Source: Hamiltosporidium tvaerminnensis FI-OER-3-3
Taxonomy: Eukaryota; Fungi; Microsporidia
DNA length: 64,000 nucleotides
Direction of reading: 5' to 3'
Assembly: GCA_022605425.2 (NCBI GenBank)
Contig: CM061248.1
Coordinates: forward strand, 372,001-436,000
A model generated the notes under the pieces. The model saw only the letters and a list, made by a program, of their open reading frames with translations, had not been told where the DNA came from and ran no database searches. Every line of letters starts with the position of its first letter. Within the stretch, counting starts at the first letter, position 1. Position numbers and translations under genes: made by a program. Below are positions 15,928 to 61,760 of the stretch, piece by piece.

Positions 15928-16120
15928 TTATACCTTCTTATATCTAATGCTTTAAACCTCTTAATTAATCATTCTTTTACTTAACGCGTATTTATTATAC
16001 CTTCTTATATCTGATGCTTAACACCTCTTAATTAACCATTCTTTTACTTAACACCTCTTAATTAACCATTCTTTTACTTAACACCTCTTAATTATACCTC
16101 TAGCTATACCTTAACACTCC
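15928..16120. repeat. CTTTTACTTAACACCTCTTAATTAACCATT tandem array, right part
   Basis: 30-bp units are visible at 16021, 16051 and 16081. Confidence 0.85.
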
Positions 16121-16413
16121 TATATAACAAAGTAAAATACCTTCTTTAAACCTCATTTTACTTTATCTCTTATATATCTATAACCCTTTATAAATAAAAT
16201 ATTTATTTATTTTACTATTCTTTCCCTCCTTTAACCCTAACCCTTACTTAAACATTACCCTTCTACCATACACCTATAAACATTACCCTTACCCTACGAT
16301 CTTACCAAAATATTACCCTTTATTCCTACCCTCCCACTCTTACTAAAATATTACCCTTCCACCCTCTCACACCTTAAATATTAACCATCATTACACCCCT
16401 CAAAATAAAAAAA

Positions 16414-19400
16414 ATGTTCCTCTCAAAAAAATACACATGGACCCCACAAAACAACACACAATTCACATCCACACCACACTTCTACTTAGATAACCACCCA
16501 TGGAAATTAATATTATGTTATACATATAATAAGTATTATATATCTATACATTACGATGGTTCTTCTTTCTTTGACATACAGACATTCCTAACTCTACAAA
16601 TTAGTTTAAAAGAAGAGTTTGATAATAAGTTAGAGGCTAATAGTAGTAGTAGTAATACTAGTAGTAATATAAGTAGTAATAGTAACAACCCTACTACTAT
16701 AAGTAGTATTAATCCTACAAAACAACAAAATACCATTTCACTCTTCCATACTCACTCTTTTAATAGATTTGATACCGACTTTGGTTTATTTACCCCTACA
16801 TTTCCTATAAATATAACACTTACCATTTATTTACTTAAAACACCTTATAATTCCTTTAAATATACTTCATTTACAGGTATTAAAAACCTAGGAGGTACTT
16901 GTTATATTAACACCCTTTTACAAACACTATTCCATATACCAGAATACCGTAACATGATACTAAGCCTAGGATATAGCAATAGTGATAGTAGGGATAATAT
17001 GTTAGATGGTAGTAGTAGTAATAATAATAGTAATATGTTAGATGGTAGTAGTAGGTAATATGATAGATGGTAGTAGTAAGGATAAATCTATATAATAACA
17101 ATAATGATAAAATAAATAACAATAAAGATACAATAAATAACAATAATGATAAAATAAATAACACTACCACTACTACACCCACACCCCCCACTACCACACC
17201 ACTTCTTTACTTACAACACCTCTTCTACCAATTACTTACACATACTGATATACAAATAAAACCTTTTATAATTAAAAGTAATATATTTACAGATACTAAC
17301 ACACATCAAGACATACATGAATATTCTAAGATATTCTTTGATTTCCTAGAGAAAGAATACAAGGGTAGTGGGGGGTGTGGTAGTAATAGTAGTAGTAGTA
17401 ATAGTAGTAGTAGTAATAATATAAGAGATATAAGGGATATAAGAGATACTAATAATAACCCTAATACTACTACTGATAATAATAACCCTAATACTACTAA
17501 CAATACTACTACTGATAATAATAATAACCCTACTACTACTAACAACAATAACCCTTCTAATAATAACAATACTACTACTAACAACAATAACCCTAATACT
17601 ACTAACAATAATACTACTAACAATAATAATAACCCTCCCCCTAACACCACTATCACCCCTACTAATAATAATAACACCCCCTCCACTAACCCTAATAACA
17701 TTATAGATGGCCTTCTTCTTAACTACATACACTGTATAGATTGTAACTGTAAAAGTACAAATAAAGAACATTTTCAAGATTTACAAGTAGATATAAGAGA
17801 TTATAACAATAACAATATAAGTAATACATTAAATAATTCTTTAAAAATATTATTTAATAAAGAAATATTAGAAGGTAATAATATGTATAAATGTAATATA
17901 CATGGACATGTACGTGCTATTAAAGGTATGTGTTTATATAAAGGACCAAGTGTACTTTTTATATTAATTAAAAGGTTTAATATTGATTATGAGACAGGAG
18001 AAGGATATAAGATTAATGATTATTTTGAGTACCCCGAGGTATTAGAGATGGTAGAGGGTGAGGGGGGAGGTGTGGGGGGTGAGGGTGAGTTTGGATGGTT
18101 TGGATGGTGATGTGTTAAGTGGTAGTGTTAGTATGGATGGTAGTAATAAGGATATAAGAGATAATATAAGAGATACTAGAGATAATATAAGAGATACTAG
18201 AGATAATATAAGAGATACTAGAGATAATACAACAGATAATATAAGAGATAATAACACCACTACCCTTACTTATAATCTTCACTCGGTTGTTGTTCACTCT
18301 GGTACTGCACATGATGGTCATTATACTGCTATTATAAATATAAAAGGTAATTATTATAAATTTAATGATACTATAGTAACACCTGTATGTAAAGAAGAAG
18401 CATTAGAATGTAATTATGGTGGTGTACATCCTTATAAGAATAAAGTAAGAGTATCTAATGCATATATGTTAGTGTATAGGAGGGTGGGTGATAATGGTTT
18501 GGATAATTTTATAGATAATAGTAGTATTAGGGATATAGGTAGTAGTAATAGGGATATAAGAGATAAGGATATAGATACTAACCCTAACCCTAATAAATGC
18601 ATAAATACTAACCCTAACCCTAATAAATGCATAAATACCAACCCTAACCCTACTATTAATACTAACCCTACCACTATTACTTACCCTAATACTACCCCCA
18701 CTATCCCTTTACCTATAAAATACCCTATACCTACTACAACCCTTCACCCCTTACTTCTCTCTACCTTTAAAAAAGAATTTAAAGATAAAATAATTTATAT
18801 TTTCTTTAAACCTATAAATATAGGTATTAAAGGTAATATTATAATAATAAGACTTAAAATGGAAGATGATTATAGAGAGAAAGTAAGAGAGATATATGGA
18901 GTATATAGGAAGTACTTATATATGTTTGAAGTGAGTAACAGTGATAGTGTAGTAGGAGGTGTAGGGATGTATAATGATATAGATAATAATCTAGTAGGGA
19001 TGGATAATAATATAGGTAATATAGATAATAATATAGTTAATAGTAATACATTAGGTAATAGTAATATAGATAATATAAATATAGGTAATAATATAGGTAA
19101 TAGTAATATAGATAATAATATAGATAAGAGTAATATAAATAATATAGATAATATAAATATAGGTAATAATATAAATAATGTAAATAACAAACATACTAAT
19201 ATAAATAATATAGATAATACTACTACCTATCCTACTCTCTCTTATACTACTACTGTTAAAGATAAAGGTATTTATTTTGCTTATTTATCTGATAATGAAT
19301 ATAACTTTAATAATAATAAAGATTACCTTTTATTTACTAAGAAATATAAAGAAATACCTTTATGTAAATATAATAATAAAGGGGTATTAATAGATTGTGA

Positions 19401-21213
19401 GGTAAAGGTAATAAGAAGGGATATGATAGGGGGTGTTAATAACAGTAGTATATTAGAGGGTGTTAATAATAGGGATATATTAGAGGGTGTTAATAACAGT
19501 AGTAAAGAAGAGGGTGTTAAGGATAAGAGTAGTAGTTATAAGGGTGTTAGTAAGAGTAGTAAAGAAGAGGGTGTTAACAATGTATCTAATGTACAACAGG
19601 GTGTTAACAGCAGTAGTAATATACAACAGGGTGTTAACAATGTATCTAATGTACAACAGGGTGTTAACAACAGTAGTAATATACAACAGGGTGTTAACAA
19701 CAGTAGTAATATACAACAGGGTGTTAACAACAGTAGTAAAGAAGAGGGTGTTAACAACAGTAGTAAAGAAGAGGGTGTTAGTAACAGTAGTAAAGAAAAG
19801 GGTGTTAACAACAGTAGTAATATACAAGAGGGTGTTAACAATGTATCTAATGTACAACACCCTGTTAACAACAGTACTACTGTACAACACCCCTTTACTA
19901 ACACTAACATATTTATAGAACACCAGTCTATTTCATATGTTATTTATATATATGGAGATAAAGAAAAGATTAAAAAGTATTTAGAGTCTTATAGAAGAGG
20001 TAAAGAAGTAGAATTAGAATATATAGATAGTAACATAGATAGTAATGATAATAGTAATATGTATGATAGTATAGAGAAGTATATATGTTATGGTAGGAAA
20101 GGTAAAGCAAATATAAAAATAAAGTATTTTATAAGAGATAGGGATAGTAGTGTTAGGGATAGTGATAGGGATAGTGATAAGTATAGTAGTATTAGTGATA
20201 GGGATAACAGTAAATATATTAAGACTAAGGACAAAGAGACTAATGAGTATAATGAGTATAAGGACAAAGAGACTAATGAGTATAATAACATATATAACAA
20301 AGAGACTAATGAGTATAATAACATATATAACATATATAACACCCTTAATGATCTTAAAATGTATTTGTGTTGTGATAAGGTTAGGTTATTAGATGGTAAG
20401 GTTATTATACCTAAGGTTTATTGGTTAATAAAAGTATTTATTAATAATGAAGAGGGTTATAATATTAATAGGGTTAGACATAAACATATAATGTGTGTTA
20501 AGAGGGGTGTTAAGGTAAAGGAGTTTATAGAGAGTGTTAAGAGGGTAGGAATAGAGTGTGGTGTTATAAGGAGTATAATGGGTAGTGATAAGGGTAGTAA
20601 GGATATGTTAGAGGGTGTTAGTGATATTGGTAAAGAAGAGGGTGTTAGTAACAGTGGTACTAGTTATAAGGGTGTTAGTAATAGTGGTAGTAGTTATAAG
20701 GGTGTTAGTGATAGTAGTAAAGAAGAGGGTGTTAGTAACTGTGGTAGTAGTTATAAGGGTGTTATTAATAGTAGTAGTAGTTATAAGGGTGTTAGTAACA
20801 ATATAGATAAACAACACCCTGTTAACAATAATACTGATACACAACACCCTGTTATTAATAATACCTTATACCCCGTTAACAATAATACCTTACACCCTGT
20901 TAGAGTTTTAGGGGTTAGAAAGGGTTGTATGTATTTAAAGGTGTTAGATGGGGATGAGTATGTAGAAGAAGTAATGGTAATAGAAAGGTGTTATATGGGT
21001 AGGTATATAAAGGGGTGTTATTTAAGAGGGTGTAGTGTTATAGGTTATTGTTTTTTAATACCTTTTAAAGAAAGTGAAAGAATAATTGAATTTAAAAGAA
21101 GAATGGGTGTTGTTAGTAGGGTTATACGGTGTAATGGAGAGGGGTTTTATGTTATGGAGGATAATGAAGTAATGGAGGTTAGTAATGAGGAGTATGTAAT
21201 GATGGAGGTTTAG
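16414..21213 (+). CDS. UBP15: Ubiquitin C-terminal hydrolase, USP7/Ubp15 type (MATH + peptidase C19), split over three ORFs in this sequence
   Basis: MATH-like N-terminus (YTW..PWKL..HSFNRFDTDFG), Cys box GIKNLGGTCYINTLLQ, HQDIHE, FQDLQVDI, IKRF...KINDYFEYP, His box LHSVVVHSG...GHY...KFND, EEALECNYGG, NAYMLVY. Motifs are collinear across ORFs 16414, 17067 and 18058. The true stop may be 21292. Confidence 0.88.
19430..19905 (+). repeat. In-frame 30-bp coding tandem repeat (QQGVNNSSNI / EEGVNNSSK)
   Basis: GGGTGTTAACAAC recurs at 27-30-bp spacing. A second block lies at ~20610-20900. Confidence 0.95.
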
Positions 21214-21292
21214 TGGAGAGGGGTTTTATGTTATGGAGGATAATGAAGTAATGGAGGTTAGTAATGAGGAGTGTGTAATGATGGAGGTGTAA
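21136..21292 (+). repeat. Tandem duplication (79-bp period) of the last ~26 codons of the USP gene
   Basis: GGAGAGGGGTTTTATGTTATGGAGGATAATGAAG occurs at 21136 and 21215. Confidence 0.95.
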
Positions 21293-21319
21293 AGGGTATA
21301 AGAGATTATGGGATGTATA

Positions 21320-21945
21320 TAAAGGGGTGTTAGCTATAAAGAATATTAGTTGTGTTATAAAGGGGTGTTAGCTATTAAGAATACCATTTGTTTTATAAAG
21401 GGGTGTTAGTTATAAGTATTTTATATTGTTAATAAAGGGGTGTTAGTTATAAAGAATTTATTTGTTTTATAAAGGGTGTTAGTTATAAGTATTTTATATT
21501 ATTTATAAAGGGGTTTTAGTTATAAAGAATACTATTTGTTTTATAAAGGGGTGTTAGTTATTAGTATTTTATATTGTTAATAAAGGGGTTTTAGTTATAA
21601 AGAATACTATTTGTTTTTTAAAGGGGTGTTAGCTATTGAGAATACTATTTGTTTTATAAAGGGTTTTAGTTATAAGTATTTTATATTGTTAATAAAGGGG
21701 TGTTAGTTATAAAGAATTTATTTGTTTTATAAAGGGGTGTTATATAAGTATTTTATATTATATTAAAAGGGTGTTAGTTATAAGTATTAATTCTAATATA
21801 TTAAAAGGGTGTTAGTTATAAGTATTAATTCTACTATATTAAAAGGGTGTTAGTTATAAGTATTATGTCTATATATTAAAGGGTTTTAGTTATAAGTATT
21901 ATGTCTATTATATTAAAGGGTGTTAGTTATAAGTATTATGTCTAA
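21320..21945. repeat. ~37-bp minisatellite with core AAAGGGGTGTTAGTTATAA
   Basis: Roughly 17 degenerate copies downstream of the USP stop codon. Confidence 0.95.
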
Positions 21946-22100
21946 CATATGTTATTCTTTATACATCTATATTTTAACAATAATTTTATATTTAATTAAA
22001 ACAATACTTTACTATCTAATAAGTGTTACTTCTAATACTTTATATCTTTAAATATAACCATATATTTATTACAAATTATTATCTTACTAAGTATAAAGGT

Positions 22101-52600: not shown

Positions 52601-54719
52601 TTCGAAAATATAGACCAAGCCCGGCGAAGCAATTATAGTTTATAAGTGTTAAAAGTCTTGTATTAATCTAAATAGCGTAATGACATAGATAAAATGCCTA
52701 AAATCACAAGGTATTGGTGTATTCATATTAATAAACAACAAAGTAGTTATTCTTAGGCAAGAACTCGATGTACTTATCTCACAAAATCAATACCCGTTCT
52801 GGATTTACTCTTTTCGGCATGTTATATTTATGTTTAAAGTTTTTATTAAGAGTAAAGTTGTTAAAGGTTTTGTACTTTAAGAACGATTAACAATTCTAGC
52901 ATAATTAGCTGCTCATGTAAATATTTTAATCTTTAAAAAACTGGCTTGAGGGGCTGTTTTGTATTTTTATAGGAAAAATGAGTAAAACTATCACTTACTT
53001 CTTATCCTCTACGGTCTTAACAATCTGTTATGTTTATAATCAAATTCTCATCTATATTATATATCCTAATAAAATATTTATGCTCATTTAAGCAAAAACT
53101 GTAAAAATATAGCCATAGACGTCTGTCCTGAGCCATATGGAATATTTTCTTTCATTATCTCTAGAATTACCATATATCTAGAGTCCATATATTATAAATT
53201 ATACAATCTAGACCAATGTAGCACAAGTTTGTCTCATACTGTAATCGTCTTGGTTTTTGTCGTTTTATCAACATCGGTTGAGTATTCACGTATTATGTTT
53301 TATCCATATTATATCCGATAAAAATAGCTTGTGGTTAATATAATTTTCAATGTGATTAGCCAGCTCTGATCAAACAGCATATATGAAAAAGCTTCTTAGC
53401 TATCTTAAGATAAATTACCGCAAAATATTTGCATAAATATATCTAGATGAATGAATGGTTTGCCTTTTTTAAACATATCTTTAACGTTTTTATTAAGCCT
53501 CGAGTAAAACATGATAAGATATCCTAATAATTTCTAGTATCTAAACCTAACACGTCCTTATGGTATTAATATCTTCACTCACCAAAATATTGTTTTGTTT
53601 TCTACATACATAAACTTTGGGTTATGAATTAGCTTAAAACTATAGTCTCGTATGGAAGAATTAAAGTATCTCCTATAAATATTTATTTCTTTCATTAAGA
53701 AAGAAAGATTGTTAAATTAAAATGTTTCTATATAATCATCTGTTTATGAATTCTTCGTTGGGCTTGAAATTTGTGATCAATGAAGCCGCTTATGAAATAC
53801 AGTAGCGATATCTATATAAAATTCTTCTTTCTTCGTCTTACTAATTATTATTACTGTAGTATATATATTTTAACTTGACACGATTTTATGTTTTCGAGTA
53901 TTCAAGCAAATATTTACCCTTTTCAGGCTCTATTATTTTTAACATACTACATGTACCGTTTAAAACTTTGGGAACTAATTGCATTTTAATCTATTCTAGC
54001 TGTCCTTGGATAGAAAAAATAAAATAAATACTTGCTTGGAAGCTCTTTTCTTAAATTTTTCAAATAGATATGTTCTTTGCCATAATTTTATCTTTTTACT
54101 CTTTTGGAACGTTTTTCGCTCATTGCGCTATAAAATAAACATTGGGAAATAGGTTGTATGTTTACCTTGATATACTTTACTCTCGGATTTGATTTCCTAA
54201 TACAATGAAAAAGCATGCCGCATGAAATGAAATATTTATGCTTTAAAATCCATACACATAATTTTAACCTATTTGCAAGTTTCTTGATTAAGAGTTTTAA
54301 ACATTATGGTTATAAAATTAACAATCAGAAATATTTTTTTTGTAGGTATTATTTACTTATTGTGGCAAATAAATATAGTTATGTTTCTCTATAGTAATAA
54401 AACATTGTGTTTTTTGTACCTTCTCTGTCTCCGATTCACATAGAACAAAACAAGTTTTAATATTTGCTATTTACCAAAAATTCTCTCTTTAAGATATTGC
54501 ATGCAAACATCTACTCTAGAATTATCTAGACAGTTTAAAATTTCGAGTCGCTTTCTGCAATCGAGATTTTTATACATAATGAATTAGAAATTTTTTACTA
54601 TTAAAAGTTGATGTTAGCATTTTGTTGGCTAGTGCTCTTAAAAGCCGGGTTTGTCTCATTTTTCACATCAATTTATTCGTGGTAAATATATTTACTATAA
54701 CACAACTTGGGTAGACACT

Positions 54720-54915
54720 CTACTACTACTATTTTGAGCTACAGCTCTTAAAGAGCCCTGGTCTTTTTATCGATTTTTTAATTTATATTATTGCGTTTTG
54801 ATTTCGTAACAATATGTTTTTGTGAAATGCGAGTGTTGTCATAGGGTCAACACTCCTCATTTATCCGGGCTTGTTACCGGCGGAAAAGAACTCATCGTAT
54901 CTTAGATGAAGTTAA
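54720..54915 (-). mobile_element. ~196-bp non-coding RTE-type retroelement headed by a twister ribozyme
   Basis: Order on the minus strand: twister motif, GAGTGTTG/CAACACTC hairpin, ATTGTTACGAAA, AGACCAGGGCTCTTTAAGAGCTGTAG, (TAG)4 tail. The 3' end matches those of the 8024 and 61761 elements. Confidence 0.75.
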
Positions 54916-54917
54916 AG
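54848..54917 (-). ncRNA. Twister ribozyme (P1 type), degenerate
   Basis: UAA-CUUC-[AU..P3 region]-GCCGG-U-AAC-AA-GC-CCGG-AUAAA-UGAG-GA-GUG-UUG follows the twister layout UAA-P2-GC..GCCGG-UCCC-AA-GC-CCGG-AUAAA-P2'-GA-GGG. There are mismatches in P2 and in both pseudoknots. Confidence 0.8.
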
Positions 54918-57900
54918 TAGATTCTTTGCCGTTTTTCACTGAACATTATTCTACGCCTCTCACAATAAAAAATGATATCAGCTTAATATGTTATAATATT
55001 AGTCCTTGCAATCATCGACACCTTGTATGATATTGCGAGGTGCATTCATTGATTTTAACGAAAATAGAGTGTTGCAGAGATTGCGAAGGAATCTATTACA
55101 TAAGTTTGCATTCGAATATAAGTTAGCTGTTGCATAATTCATGGTATCGTGCCTTAAAATTTTTAGATTTATTCCAACAATTTTCTTAAGTTTATCTATA
55201 AAGGATATCGGTATGTAAAAATAGTTTAGCGAATATATAACATTGGGATTACATTTTTTATTTTCAAGCTTTGGATTTATATTGTTTTGCTCAGGATTTT
55301 AAGATTTTTCTTGAATAAGATATAAACGTGAATCATAATATCCCAGATTATCTTTTGAGCATGAGCAGAGCTTTCATGGTTTGTCCTGCAATTTTTAACG
55401 CTTAAACCTAAATTTTAAAGCTTTGTTTACTTTTCGGGGTGAATTAGATATGGATTTTAGCACCATTTTTCGGTTTTCTGAAAAACCTAACTCGACTCGA
55501 AATTGTTAGTCTGTAAAATAAAAAAATAATGCTTTTTTAAGGAATGATAACTTGAAATAAAAGTGAAATATATTGTGTATTATATTTTGCATCTCTTTTC
55601 ATTTTTATTGGAATATTTTATTTGATTTATATTATTCTTATGATTCTAAATTATTACAATTTTTATTACTTACTTTTTTCTTATTTTGGCTCATAATCAC
55701 TTCTCAAAAGTATATTTTTAATAACTAATATATGTCGCTTTTATTGAAATAGCAATAAATATGTATTTTAATCAATCATCTTTTAGAACCTATAACACAT
55801 TGCTGTCAAAATTCTCACCATTATTATGGTTTTCTGTATAAAAAACGTTCTATTTATTTTCTATTTGATTTATAAGGTATTTCTTAGAATTTTTTTAATT
55901 GTTTTAACTTAGAGGCTCTTAGAATGTTAGGTTTAAAGAGTGCTGTTCCAAGATTCGCGCAATCAAAGAAATTTTTTTTCTTTTGAAAAAATATACTTTT
56001 GGCATATTAGATTTTTATACTCGGATTATTATTTGATTTTGAGCATCGCTATATCCGTAACCTGTTATAGAGACATGTATTTATTTTTTAAATGTTATAT
56101 ATGCACTTATATGTCTTAAATAAATAAATATTTCGCAAACATATATCAGTATCGCTTGTATTCCAAAATTACAAAGCCTTATATCTTAAAAATGTGCAAA
56201 GCTTATTAGATGTACACTCACATGCGTAAGCCTCATTAATTTTAGTTCCAAGGGACTATTACAGATTAAATCAATCTTGAGCTTACGAAAACGATTACCA
56301 TATTGACTTACTTACTCATCACTTGTTCGAAACGAATATACTTCTAGAAAATATATCTGAGCCACTATTTCGTATCTATCTAAACGTCATATCCTATATC
56401 AGTCGGTATAATCGGCTACTTTGCATTTCTAGCTTTTTAAAGTGGTCTTTTTTTGTATCTCCCGGATGCTATGCTTTCTAATTTAAGTCAGCAAAGCATG
56501 GTTTACATGCTTTTACCCGGCCTCACTTAACCTTTTATACGTGGTTTAAATTTAGTAACATCGAATCCTTAGAATTACTTTATTGAAAATTTTAGATATA
56601 TTCTAGAGTTTTTTTTCAATTTGAAAAACACATAGAACAACTGTAAGTGTAAAATAGAGATTGCCATCTATTGCTTCAAACAATGATTTTAATGTCAATT
56701 TCACATAAATATGGTCGATCAAAATTCTCTTTTACGTAATTATCGCTTTCATTATCTATTTTCAAAAAGTATTTTATTTTAATATCTAAATTTCATGATT
56801 CTATAAGTTCGTAGATCAATATTCATAGTTCAAATGCTATATTTAAAAAGCTTTAAGAAGATTTATTTATCAGAATATTAATATATGATTTTTCGCTATA
56901 AGTGATTTAATTTGTGAATTTTCTTCGATTTTAGGGAAGATAATTTAGACAAAACTCGAAGGGTATAGATTTTTTAGACAATCTGCTTGTAAGAAGCAAC
57001 TTCAAATTAGGTAAAATTTTTGATCTATAACTGTCTTGTATGAAAACACTACAGCAAACAAAAGAAAAATTTTTTGCAAAAAAATTTATAACAAGTACCC
57101 TGTTACAACTTCAATCTCATATTCTTTTCGAAATACAGAAAAGATATTATTTGGTCGTAAAACTTGTATTAATATATATTATTTATATTAAGTATAGTTT
57201 TTCATGAATATTACGGGCACCAGTATGAAATATTCGAATATTTTAATTTATAAACATAAAACATCATCGCAATGTCATCAATTTGGGCATTGTTTTCATA
57301 AAACTTTAAAAACAGTTTATATAACTTCGAAGTAAACTTAAAAATTTGTTAGATTCTAAAAAGGCATAATATATAGAATTTTCTGCCATATATTATTAAA
57401 TAATACCAATATTATCTATAAATTTTGAATAATTTATAATGCAATAAAAATTTCTAGATGTGTGATAACTCAATTAAATCAATACATGACATTTTTTAGC
57501 CCAATATCAGGTATTTATAATACAAGATGATATTCAGGTTGTAGGCTTTGTAGTAAATACATGTCTTTCTTAAATTTAGTTCGTTTAGAAATATTTGATG
57601 TATCATAAAAACATTTTAAAATTTATTGCAATCGTAACCTTATCCTATCTAAGAAATGTATTATATTTGATAAGACTTTTATATAAATTGTGGTATTTAC
57701 AAAAAATACAAATATTCTGATAGAATGAATACTTTTCTTTCTTAAACATTTCAAATATTTACTAAGTTCATTTTGGGCCAAAGCTAACGCTTGTACTTGA
57801 TAGTTTTATGTTTCTGGGTGATTTTCTGTGTAAATTTACCATATAATGTACAGTTGTAGAAAGTAGATGTATAATTCTGATTTACGCTATCTTTGTCAAA

Positions 57901-60900
57901 GATTTGTAGAAACTAGAACAAGTTTCAAAAAAGCCTGGCTTCGCTTTTTCTTGGTCAAGCAATTAGCCTAACATATTTACTAATATAATCTTCTAAAAAA
58001 GAAAATATGTTGTAGATTGAGTATGTATTTCAACTATATCTTTCTATTCAAATACTTTAAATTTAAAACCAAAATTTTGTAAAAAAGACAATGTAAAAGT
58101 TAAATTTAGATAGACTCTAAGGCTTTAAAAGAAAACTTATTTCTTTTTATATTGTTATGTTTATATACTAATAAATGTTTAATCTAGTTTACAAATATTT
58201 CTATAGAAAACTTGAAATTAACAAAGACGAAATATTACAATTAAATTTTTAACTGGGTATAAAATAATTTCAAGAGACTATTTTTTTGAGTGAAGTGCAT
58301 ATTAACGATTATAAAGAAGGTTTTTTTAAAACAAAGATTAATTTTATCAAAAGGAAACAATATTACCACAACTATGATAATAAACTATGAGTAATGAAAA
58401 GAAAGTACGAAATCAAAAGCTTTCTGTTTAAAAAAATCTTATAGCTTTTAGTGGATCGTTGTCGGATTTTCGCTGCGAGATAAATTAACTATTATTGGAT
58501 GTTTCGTGTGGATTTGCAAAGAAAAGAAATTTACAAGAAATGAAAAGAGTTTTTTGAAGTTAGCAAAATTTAATGTAGCTTGATTTGAAAACCACAATAG
58601 AATTTGTAAGTAATTTTCATAAATAACACAAATTTTATCTATTCACTCAAGTCTAGAGTTGAGTACTTCGCATAACAAAAAAATGTTGCAAAAGAACTGA
58701 AATTCTTTCCGTAAACCTTTTCTAGATTGTAATATTAGCATAAAATAATGTTTTTTGCCTATCGTCCGGATGCATTTAGTTAGATAATTTGTTTAGGTAG
58801 AAAATATAGATGCCTCTAGACAGCAGCAAGTTCTGGCGAGTCCATTGTAGGCTTGGTAGTCCAATAACATACGGAAACGGGATAGTTCGAACCTGAGAAC
58901 TTACCTCATATTTAATGGCTAAAAAACCCTTTTAAAGGGTAGCTATTCGGAAATTGGGTATGTAAGTGATACTTATGAGGAGTTCGACGCAACTATCTAT
59001 TAAAAATTTAGAAATTTCTAAGTGTCATGAAATAAATATTACATTTGCAATTTTTATGAATAGACATAATATTTATCGAAAAAACCAAAAAAAATATAAA
59101 TGGGAATGAATTATAAGAAATCAAAACTCATTTACTTTTTCTACGCATCTTAAGGGGGATTTTTATGATTTAAGAAAATTCAATTTGCTGATATTTCTAT
59201 TCTTAATGGTTCTAGGTAAATATAAATCTAATTTTATACAGAGAACAAAAAATCTTTTATTTCTATGTACATTCGAAAGATTCTTTCGCTGTACTTCTTC
59301 GCTTCTTCTTAACGCTGCCATCAAGTACTATTTCAAGCTGACAAAACATTGTTTGTTAAAACAATACCTTTTATTGTATACGAAATATTTTTTTGATCAA
59401 AAAATTAGAAAAATATAAACTACATAGAGAGTCTTATTTTAAAAAAATTTCAATTCTTTCAGAAGATACAATCTTTTATCTTCGATTTTTTTCATTTCTT
59501 CATATATATTTTTATTCGAAAAAACTCGATATTTTTGGTCAAAATATTCGAAATTTTCTCAGTTGTCTTCTTTTATTTATTAAGCTAACAAGAAAACACA
59601 TTAAAATTTATCGAGATCCTAAAAATACACGACTTTCGTTTCTATATGTAAATTGACAATTTTACTAAAATGCAATATTATATATTGAAATTTAAATATA
59701 TAAGACTGAATTTACATTATTGGATTTACTTTTAAAATATCTCATATAAAATATCTCTAGCGGGAACTTTTAAAGTTTTTTAAATTTAAAGTGTTAGACA
59801 ATTTAAACAACACTGCTTCTATGTCGTCATTTCCGTTATAAGTTGTATTGGTTTGAAAAATATCTGAAACTATAAAACGGTTTTGGTGCTAGCTTATAGA
59901 ACCGGAAAAAAAGCAGAAATTTGCGAAACCATAGTTTAAATGTCGTATATATATGAAAATCAAAAGTGGTTTTATTAACCAGTATGGTAGGCGCGACTTC
60001 AAAAACATTAACAAAGTATTTATCTTAAAAAAAGAATTTTTGCATAATATTTCTCATAAACATACTCCGGATATTTTTATCTCGCAATACTCAATAAATA
60101 TAACAAATTCAAAAGAATTTACAAATAAAAGTTCTTGATGCTTACATAAATGATGCATATGCTAAACTCGTATTATTGTTTTTATTATTTAAAATTGTAA
60201 TTCATAGATTGTTTGTTCAAATTAATATTGTAAATGAATTTTTTATAATAAAAAAATTCAAAATGAAAAAAACGTAACTTAAAAACATGATTGCCTATTA
60301 TAATATCTTATAAATTAAGACATAGATTTTGCTATCTTTAGAAAACTTTTATTTGAGAGAAACATTTTGTTGTCAATAAAGTTTTTTTAAATCAAATGTA
60401 AAATCTGATATTACGATCCAAAACCATAATATTTTGTTTAAGAACATAAGAAGTTTTACAAAATATGTATAAAAAAACACTTATAAATACTTTGTACGGA
60501 ACACTTATTTTATATACTTTGGATATTATCACATTACAGACAATTTTCGCGGTTTAATCGATATAAATCAAAAATCTAACCTATATTAATATGAATATTT
60601 TATGACTTAGAACCTTCTTTATTTTTCTTTTTCAAATATAAAATGTCTTACTTTCCTTACTTATACTTTGATTGTAAAAAGTTTAATGGATTATAGGTAC
60701 TAAATATTTTATCTTCGTTTTTTCTGATTAAGTTCTATTGAATTCGTAAAGTAAGACTTCAAATCATTAAGAGAATAAAGTTGGAAAAATATGTAGAAAA
60801 TTACATCACTGTGGGGAAAAACGGTGAACTTTCACTTAAAGTTACACACTTTGTATATTACATACTAGAAAGCACACGCATTTTTTTATTAATGAATATG

Positions 60901-61760
60901 CTGCCTTGTAAGTATGTTTTATTTAGTTTTTTCTTTCGAACGCATTAATAGCTATAATTTTGCTGTAAATCTATTTCCAATTATATTCCCATTTGCATCC
61001 AATATTCAAAACTATGCAATAGTATTGGATTTGTTCATTAAAATTTTATCATCAGTTTCGTTTAATAAACTTAAATCTCATAATAAGTCTATGTCGCCAT
61101 TTTAGGTATCTCTGCTGATTATTAAATTTTGTTAAAAAATATTTTCCTAGATAAACTTTGAAGTTTTGTTCAAGTAAAGTTTGGTTAACCTTGATCTTAC
61201 AAAAGTCGCAATTCTAAACAAGTATGGATCATAATGTCTAGAATATTTCAATTTTGAATTTAATATTTAATCTTCGACGTTAGTTTCTTATTCGGAAATG
61301 TAAGATGTATCTTATTTTCATGCTTTAGATTAGTCTAAAATTAAGCATAATTTCCATTAAAAATTGAATAAGCATTTTTTTGCATTTAGATGTAAAATTG
61401 TTATTCAAATAGTTTTACATCTTTATACACTAAATACAAGCTGTCAGTTAAATAAGCAAAAATACATTTTAATGACTATTTTTAATTTTCTAGAGATCAA
61501 TGAGCCTATTCTTAATTATATTTGCCAAATAAGTAATTTATTCGGCATACAAATATTTAAAATCGATAGCAAAAAATCAAAACCACGTACGATTCTCTAG
61601 TGGTGTAATTTTAAAAAAACCTGTGGAAGATCGCGTTTAATATTTAGGCAAGAATTTTTCTTATACTGTTTTCATATTAGTTTTTGCATAGTGTGGCAAA
61701 CTCAAACCCGATTAAAGTGCTTTTGTTTTTTTAAAATATTCTTAACTATATTTAAGAATT

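Follow-up and report, generated by a model that had tools for sequence, protein, structure and literature searches.

Hamiltosporidium tvaerminnensis is a parasite of Daphnia, and one short stretch of its genome raises the question of whether a self-cleaving ribozyme once set the 5' end of a microsporidian retroelement. The stretch lies on the minus strand of a 64-kb window (C3:372001-436000; the whole of this DNA is called the window below). A first-pass annotation had read it as a miniature retroelement headed by a twister ribozyme in a microsporidian-type genome, and the organism is indeed the microsporidian H. tvaerminnensis. Our data indicate that window 54913-54720 (-) is very probably a fossil copy of a short non-LTR element, which is an internal deletion of a 3.1-kb RTE-like LINE and belongs to an extinct family. 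The genome searched here comprises 21,638,905 bp in 17 contigs with about 26% G+C; the published values are 21.64 Mb, 17 contigs and 26.60% G+C (PMC10542269).

Architecture of the element in the window

All parts of the element lie on the minus strand, and they were placed by direct reading, by the Rfam alignment and by comparison with other copies.

54720-54913 (-): whole non-autonomous element, 194 nt, starting with base A1 of the 3' product of twister cleavage and closing with (TAG)4; delimited by BLAST and the family alignment
54847-54918 (-): match to Rfam twister-P1 (RF03160), model positions 1-68, 33.3 bits
54916-54911 (-): UUUAAC, with UAAC at the predicted cut; direct reading
54913-54914 (-): predicted scissile bond between U54914 (flank-derived, position -1) and A54913 (first element base); Rfam alignment
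54908-54911 (-): P2 5' strand CUUC, with its partner UGAG at 54859-54856 and three of four pairs standing; Rfam alignment and pair counts
54905-54907 (-): AUC replacing the conserved GCC (pseudoknot T2 5' strand), changes 15G>A and 16C>U
54865-54881 (-): P4 hairpin GCCGG / CCGG with loop UAACAAGC, in which the T1 loop CCC is mutated to AAC (48C>A, 50C>A); by direct reading GCCGG is 54881-54877, the loop 54876-54869 and CCGG 54868-54865
54864-54860 (-): AUAAA linker; direct reading
54859-54851 (-): UGAG-GAGUG; direct reading
54851-54855 (-): GAGUG, counterpart of the conserved GAGGG, with the middle G of the T1 3' strand changed to U (73G>U)
54775-54846 (-): body from the LINE 5' UTR; both the short and the long copies retain it, and it can be recognised in L074 and L076, two intact relatives
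54732-54774 (-): 3' module that the LINE also has at its 3' end; it contains the stem-loop GCUCUUUAAGAGC (54756-54744) and was placed by aligning the 3' ends of 12 short elements and 15 LINEs
54756-54744 (-): GCTCTTTAAGAGC within the 3' block; direct reading
54720-54731 (-): (TAG)4 / (GTA)n microsatellite tail; direct reading, with (GTA)n in most short copies

The twister signature, with P4, its loop and AUAAA, reads on the minus strand as the annotation had described it. Some 120 nt beyond it the 3' block GGGCTCTTTAAGAGCTGTAGC is found, followed by the (TAG)4 run that ends at 54720; both had been noticed earlier. The BLAST matches of other copies cover the window from 54720 up to 54910-54930, and the limits of conservation in the family alignment define the two ends of the element. 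The Rfam alignment puts the cut where it had been predicted, at 54914/54913, and it is at this point that the copies begin to resemble one another.

Some other features of the window were also observed. About 55 nt beyond the tail, at 54625-54668 (-), there is a second short stretch like the family 3' module (…CCCGGCTTTTAAGAGCACTAGCC…CAAAATG…), for which BLAST is not significant; it may be an orphan, extremely 5'-truncated insertion. A 61-nt match at 60880-60938 (-), with 77% identity to the 5' UTR of the LINE copy L057 (element positions 120-178), is probably another fragment of the twister-LINE family. At 54831-54855 (-), GAGUGUUG (GAGGG and the P1 3' strand, with the G>U of the window copy) is perfectly complementary to CAACACUC 9 nt downstream. 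The copy L012 has a near-perfect hairpin at the equivalent site, and the family majority pairs at eight of nine positions; once transcribed, this hairpin may compete with the twister as another way of folding. Far from the element, window 16001-22000 shows GC skew of -0.39, +0.32 and +0.73 in successive 2-kb bins, and these swings overlap a 1051-aa ORF (18058-21213) whose sole Pfam hit is a C-terminal piece of UCH ubiquitin hydrolase.

Identity of the twister head

At gathering thresholds, the Rfam scan of the whole 64-kb window reported nothing. A permissive scan of 54300-55300 gave a full-length match to twister-P1 RF03160 at 54918-54847 (-), with 33.3 bits and an E value of 3.7e-5 for 1 kb; in the scan of the whole genome (21.6 Mb) the same site has an E value of 1.9e-4. 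The genome scan with RF03160 found 31 sub-threshold heads, the best with 43.9 bits (E 1.7e-7 per genome), and no genomic copy reaches the curated gathering score of 67.2 bits. Thus the covariance search that the first-pass annotation had proposed bore it out as far as a full-length match at E 1.9e-4 per genome, and fell short of it at the gathering score. A family covariance model (R1), which was built from 33 aligned heads (alignment A2), finds at least 53 heads in the genome. Further heads in the genome include the following.

C3:519304-519376: twister head
C3:1089556-1089631: twister head
C10:118500-118577, C15:1071812-1071888 and C1:727332-727407: the least damaged heads of the genome

The match to twister is more than chance, and the motif is statistically unusual. 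The conserved core was taken as the 31 positions in capitals in the Rfam consensus, that is UAA, GCC, G-CCGG-UCCCAAGC-CCG, UAAA and GAGGG. It was found that the majority base of the 33 heads, over the 77-nt heads as aligned in A2, agrees with this core at 31 of 31 positions, including T1 CCC/GGG and T2 GCC/AAGC. The further copies which had been called for thus exist, 23-40 of them by BLAST, and the majority of the 33 heads restores both the core and the pseudoknots. When the canonical structure is laid on A2, 69.9% of the pair cells are standard, as against 40-44% with the 3' partners slid by 1-3 columns. The helices are present in canonical order with 69% of cells paired in P2, 74% in P3 and 75% in P4, and the two pseudoknots are paired at the family level in 72% (T1) and 86% (T2) of cells. 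In P1, 52% of cells are paired, which is near the slid-register background, and its 5' strand falls in columns that have no majority base.

Covariation among the 33 heads was also sought, as had been suggested: no compensatory signal was detected in A2, and column shuffles give 69.0% paired cells. The ribozyme structure therefore rests on conservation and register, because no covariation exceeds the shuffles. Absence of covariation is expected for neutrally decaying copies of one functional master. MFE folds of the decayed copies were uninformative.

Two relatives from public read sets bear on the meaning of the threshold.

L076 (SRR28250318, 3209 nt): twister at 58-133 with 57.9 bits, E 4.7e-11 and a perfect core; 962-aa APE+RT ORF; (GAA)n tail
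L074 (ERR13948497): starts mid-twister (3' half, 1-35); 954-aa ORF

Since L076 also stays below the threshold in spite of its perfect core, failing the gathering score is no argument against the twister identity of heads that have no conserved P1. The Rfam twister-P1 threshold systematically misses P1-less LINE heads, and associations between twister and LINE are thus probably under-counted.

The repeat family and its 5' junction

The annotation had taken the locus for a non-autonomous retroelement of about 200 nt, and this is borne out by a 194-nt unit that recurs at least 23-40 times. BLAST of window 54700-54930 (-) against the genome gives 23 places at 70-82% identity, and a more sensitive BLAST on the fetched loci gives about 40 copies of the unit with an overall identity of 66-82%. 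The copy numbers (23-40 units, at least 53 heads) are lower bounds.

The resemblance within the family begins exactly at the predicted cut U^AAC. In A2, column 9 (A1 of the cleavage product) is A in 31 of the 33 heads and column 8 (position -1) is T in 19 of 33, and columns 2-7, upstream of TAAC, show no majority base. Target-site duplications (TSDs) were looked for in 21 short copies with unshared flanks, in which the 25 nt before A1 were matched against what follows the tail. An ungapped match score of at least 8 was found in 14 of these 21 independent copies as compared to 24 of 420 mismatched-flank controls, and at a score of 7 or more there are 18 matches, 13 of which end between -2 and +1 of the predicted bond. 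Perfect duplications of 13-15 nt flank four copies (L011, L014, L015 and L017). The full-length LINE copy L056 has a 13-nt TSD that ends at -2 and reaches the cut with one mismatch. The duplication of the window copy itself is weak (TCTAC, 5 nt).

These junctions indicate that the reverse-transcribed RNA would have begun at the first A of the 3' cleavage product or 1-2 bases from it. As the TSDs abut the predicted cut, the ribozyme probably cut in vivo while the family was mobile, and the junctions can be regarded as strong though indirect evidence, at the level of sequence, of such cleavage in the active period.

The autonomous partner

Some of the heads run on into another, longer sequence, and five loci of this type align with one another over about 3.1 kb, starting at the ribozyme. 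Around 40 further LINE pieces exist in the genome, most of them 5'-truncated with a common 3' end, and this combination is the signature of target-primed reverse transcription. The hallmarks of that process are all present, namely 5' truncation, TSDs and (GTTA)n or (GTA)n tails. Thus an autonomous element sharing both ends, which the annotation had postulated, was recovered as a 3.1-kb APE+RT LINE with the same head and the same 3' 50 nt or so.

Stop-free pieces of the LINE show endonuclease motifs from about nt 200 (…NVRSL…QEVRW…) and RT motifs (…YADD…) further on; Pfam gives weak hits only, to Exo_endo_phos and RVT_1 in that order. Full-length proteins for tblastn were found with a 161-aa RT piece as the query, and this single piece was searched because the piecewise protein alignment was too patchy for a profile. 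In tblastn, the LINE runs collinear with a 989-aa single-ORF APE+RT protein (residues 27-944) and with the 954-aa protein P0081 (residues 2-849). From this collinearity the LINE is read as having a single ORF, with an N-terminal APE followed by RT and with no room for ORF1. The homologues of P0081 are about 960-1000 aa long and lie on 3.0-3.3-kb contigs. Several of them are labelled 'Craniofacial development protein 2', a label which we take to derive from a BovB/RTE remnant. The size, the single ORF, the simple-repeat tail and these labels suggest that the LINE is RTE-like.

Every copy of the LINE is broken by stops. The longest open frame is at most 184 aa, and a genome-wide look for a longer one of the twister-LINE family found none. 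A 178-aa endonuclease remnant of the family has 99% identity to an NCBI protein of H. tvaerminnensis, and a word-indexed protein search with this APE piece gave no clade name.

Two groups of elements with intact RT ORFs were considered as partners and rejected, as neither matches the twister-headed LINE: the two-ORF elements near contig ends, with RT ORFs of 914-939 aa, and an abundant family of about 1250 aa. The two-ORF LINEs (ORF1 361-393 aa, ORF2 914-939 aa) are intact, cluster near contig ends and are unrelated to the twister LINE by tblastn.

C4:7827-8510: intact two-ORF LINE
C9:2559-3242 and 6055-6732: intact two-ORF LINEs
C13:50903-51583 and 59462-60142: intact two-ORF LINEs (the loci of this set are L059 and L060)

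Intact RT-containing ORFs of about 1250 aa are found at more than 60 places (for example C12:292565-293284, locus L062), many of them with identical RVT_1 scores. This family is apparently young and is probably the main live retroelement of the H. tvaerminnensis genome.

Origin of the short element

The short element consists of about 150 nt of the LINE 5' end joined to about 55 nt of the LINE 3' end. LINE 5' ends match window 54884-54769 at 68-71%. Fifteen LINE 3' ends align with the last 50 nt or so of the short element, a stretch that contains the stem-loop and the …GCTGTAGCGCC… block, and the G-to-A and C-to-U differences between the stem-loops of the short element and the LINE keep the pairing. 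All short copies have one common internal junction together with flanks and duplications of their own, which means that the deletion derivative was itself mobilised. Segmental duplicates with common flanks also occur (L015/L016, L040/41/42/45, L023/24 and L028/29).

The exact parent lineage appears to be only partly identified, because the short element has a (GTA)n tail and the LINE lineage that was sampled a (GTTA)n tail. In its P3 sequence the short element agrees with the LINEs of lineage L020/L023 and not with those of L001/L004/L005. A classical pol III SINE was considered and rejected, as the head is the LINE's own twister and UTR and not one of tRNA, 7SL or 5S type. The tRNA scan of the element found none, and neither the permissive nor the gathering Rfam scans gave a family of 7SL/5S type.

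Decay of the family and state of the window copy

The core of the window copy matches at 25 of 31 positions, and 12 of its 17 pairs are intact. The six changes are C13U in P2, G15A and C16U in the T2 5' strand, C48A and C50A in the T1 loop and G73U in the T1 3' strand. In T1 two of three pairs are kept (A-U and C-G, with A x G broken), and in T2 one of two (U.G only). The annotation had proposed that AAC/GUG at T1 descends from an ancestral compensated CAC/GUG pseudoknot. This did not hold, as the family majority is CCC/GGG and AAC/GUG is a private decay of the window copy; the other copies have CCC, UCC, UUC and so on with GGG, GAG or GUG, in unlinked fashion.

The window copy has 83.6% identity to the family majority (K2P 0.185). 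The mean K2P of the family to the majority is 0.195, 43% of the changes are C>T and G>A, and every sampled copy has at least four mismatches among the 31 core positions. With six core mismatches and both pseudoknots damaged, the window copy is almost certainly inactive and would no longer cleave, as the annotation had suspected. It has no likely present function, and the family is now extinct in the H. tvaerminnensis genome. It was also observed that the majority sequence of the short-element family has about 45% G+C as compared to 26.6% G+C in the genome, and that its decay is mostly by C>T and G>A. This pattern would be expected if the master copy was under structural constraint, or if the family came from a genome richer in G+C.

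Proposed mechanism and alternative explanations

A plausible life cycle of the family can be put together from these data. The element, for which no promoter is shown, would have been transcribed inside a longer host transcript. The TSDs suggest that the twister then cut between the flank-derived base at -1 and A1, leaving an RNA that starts with AAC and carries a 5'-OH. The RT of the LINE could have recognised the common 3' stem-loop and the tail, and target-primed reverse transcription into a new site would have left TSDs of 10-16 nt; both the TSDs and the tails are seen in the copies. The 5' strand of P1 would be supplied by each new flank and not by the element, as in Perere-3.

It could be argued that the window copy is still a working ribozyme, which cuts read-through transcripts at 54914/54913 as a mobile element or as a host RNA-processing signal. 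P4, the AAGC loop, the AUAAA linker and three of four P2 pairs are intact in it, its middle T1 pair is A-U, and some activity has been reported for twisters without P1 (PMC8501958). We nevertheless consider this very improbable, as the changed core positions include both 5' bases of T2 and three of the six T1 bases, and the copy is about 16% diverged from the family majority. Moreover, the genome has no intact partner RT of the twister-LINE family (open frames at most 184 aa), and the family decays neutrally with no compensatory signal. Equally, the 194-nt units might be LINE insertions that lost their middles after insertion, or products of segmental duplication only, and some copies clearly are segmental duplicates with common flanks. 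This reading is less probable still: with the duplicates removed, 21 copies with the same internal junction and different flanks are left, 14 of them with their own TSDs, and repeated hits on the same junction are not expected from independent deletions.

The most sceptical view is that chance or convergence in an AT-rich repeat produced the likeness to twister and that the head of this retroelement had never been a ribozyme. Every genomic hit is below the Rfam gathering score and there is no covariation beyond shuffles, as such a view would have it, and yet we regard it as the least probable of all. A chance motif sits badly with a family majority that has the complete core and both pseudoknots, with a best hit at E 1.7e-7 per genome, and with the intact relative L076, which has a homologous UTR and ORF and a perfect core at 57.9 bits and is sub-threshold only because its P1 is flank-derived. 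The 5' ends and the TSDs of the elements also coincide with the known twister cut site, and catalysis by a head of the same architecture has been proven for Schistosoma (PMC8501958). A fossil deletion derivative of a twister-headed LINE is thus the reading that we retain.

Comparison with known systems

Among known systems the nearest is found in Schistosoma mansoni, where Perere-3, an element of the RTE clade, carries a T-variant twister at its 5' end (Liu et al. 2021, NAR, PMC8501958). This twister cleaves in vitro and in reporter assays, the TSDs of Perere-3 abut the AA of the cut site, the P1 strand is flank-derived and the tail is GTAA (PMC8501958). Perere-3 and the Hamiltosporidium LINE both have the twister at the extreme 5' end of a single-ORF APE+RT LINE, and in neither is insertion site-specific. 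Because both rely on the flank for the 5' strand of P1, they escape the usual twister searches and the Rfam thresholds. Both end in a tandem repeat, GTAA in Perere-3 and GTA or GTTA in Hamiltosporidium, and the argument from TSDs at the cut site to cleavage in vivo is the same for the two (PMC8501958). The differences lie in the host, which is a flatworm in one case and a microsporidian, a relative of fungi, in the other, and in the state of the family, which in Hamiltosporidium is extinct and decayed, with cleavage inferred from sequence. Copies number in the tens in Hamiltosporidium, whereas Perere-3 has hundreds to thousands, and an amplified 194-nt deletion derivative like that of Hamiltosporidium is not described for Perere-3 in PMC8501958. 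The Hamiltosporidium family carries 5' processing of an RTE LINE, the one biological role documented for twister ribozymes, from a flatworm to a microsporidian.

The two relatives from read sets resemble the Hamiltosporidium LINE in having a twister, a UTR of about 140 nt, an ORF that starts at ...GTWNVR... and a trinucleotide-repeat tail. The roughly 140 nt between ribozyme and ORF are recognisably homologous to the Hamiltosporidium UTR in both. They differ from it in their intact ORFs (954 and 962 aa) and perfect twister core, with 25-36% protein identity to the decayed Hamiltosporidium copies. No ribozyme was found in the top full-length relatives of the 161-aa RT piece, namely the two-ORF elements L068-L071 and the insect locus L072, or in the P0081 relatives L077 and L078; the relatives without a ribozyme comprise two-ORF elements, an aphid locus and a dolichopodid fly locus. 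L074 and L076 extend the partnership of twister and LINE to further organisms, which suggests that it is old and broad rather than a one-off.

It is possible to go further and to propose that twister, conserved UTR and single-ORF APE/RT make up an old, widespread RTE sub-lineage which is not peculiar to Schistosoma, that an animal, possibly an arthropod host, passed it on to the microsporidian by horizontal transfer, and that the short non-autonomous element to which it gave rise there is the first known one with a twister head. We hold this tentatively and consider it unlikely in its full form. Hints in its favour are that the nearest full-length protein relatives come from insects and public read sets, that the family majority has about 45% G+C in a 26.6% G+C genome, and that intact twister-headed relatives with a homologous UTR exist elsewhere.

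Self-cleaving ribozymes of other classes head retroelements as well. HDV-like ribozymes are found at the 5' ends of non-LTR elements of the R2, RTE and L1Tc/NARTc types. There too a 5' self-cleaving ribozyme frees the element RNA from its co-transcript and sets the 5' end, and NARTc, like the short element of Hamiltosporidium, is a non-autonomous partner with the ribozyme head of its LINE. HDV-like ribozymes belong to a different class and cut upstream of themselves without upstream pairing, whereas twister-P1 normally uses an upstream P1 strand. The Sm-alpha SINE, with its hammerhead, and the retrozymes are also short non-autonomous retroelements with a small self-cleaving ribozyme. Both have the hammerhead; the former is a pol III SINE related to tRNA, and the latter possess LTRs and form RNA circles. 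In the Hamiltosporidium element, by comparison, each unit has a single ribozyme, the tail is of LINE type, TSDs are present and there is no tRNA head.

A literature search for twister ribozymes together with microsporidia found no paper, and neither RTE elements nor ribozymes are mentioned in two papers that survey transposable elements of microsporidia. The mechanism itself is already known; what is new here is the microsporidian host lineage and the amplified 194-nt derivative. A mechanism is thereby assigned to one repeat family among those that make the Hamiltosporidium genome large.
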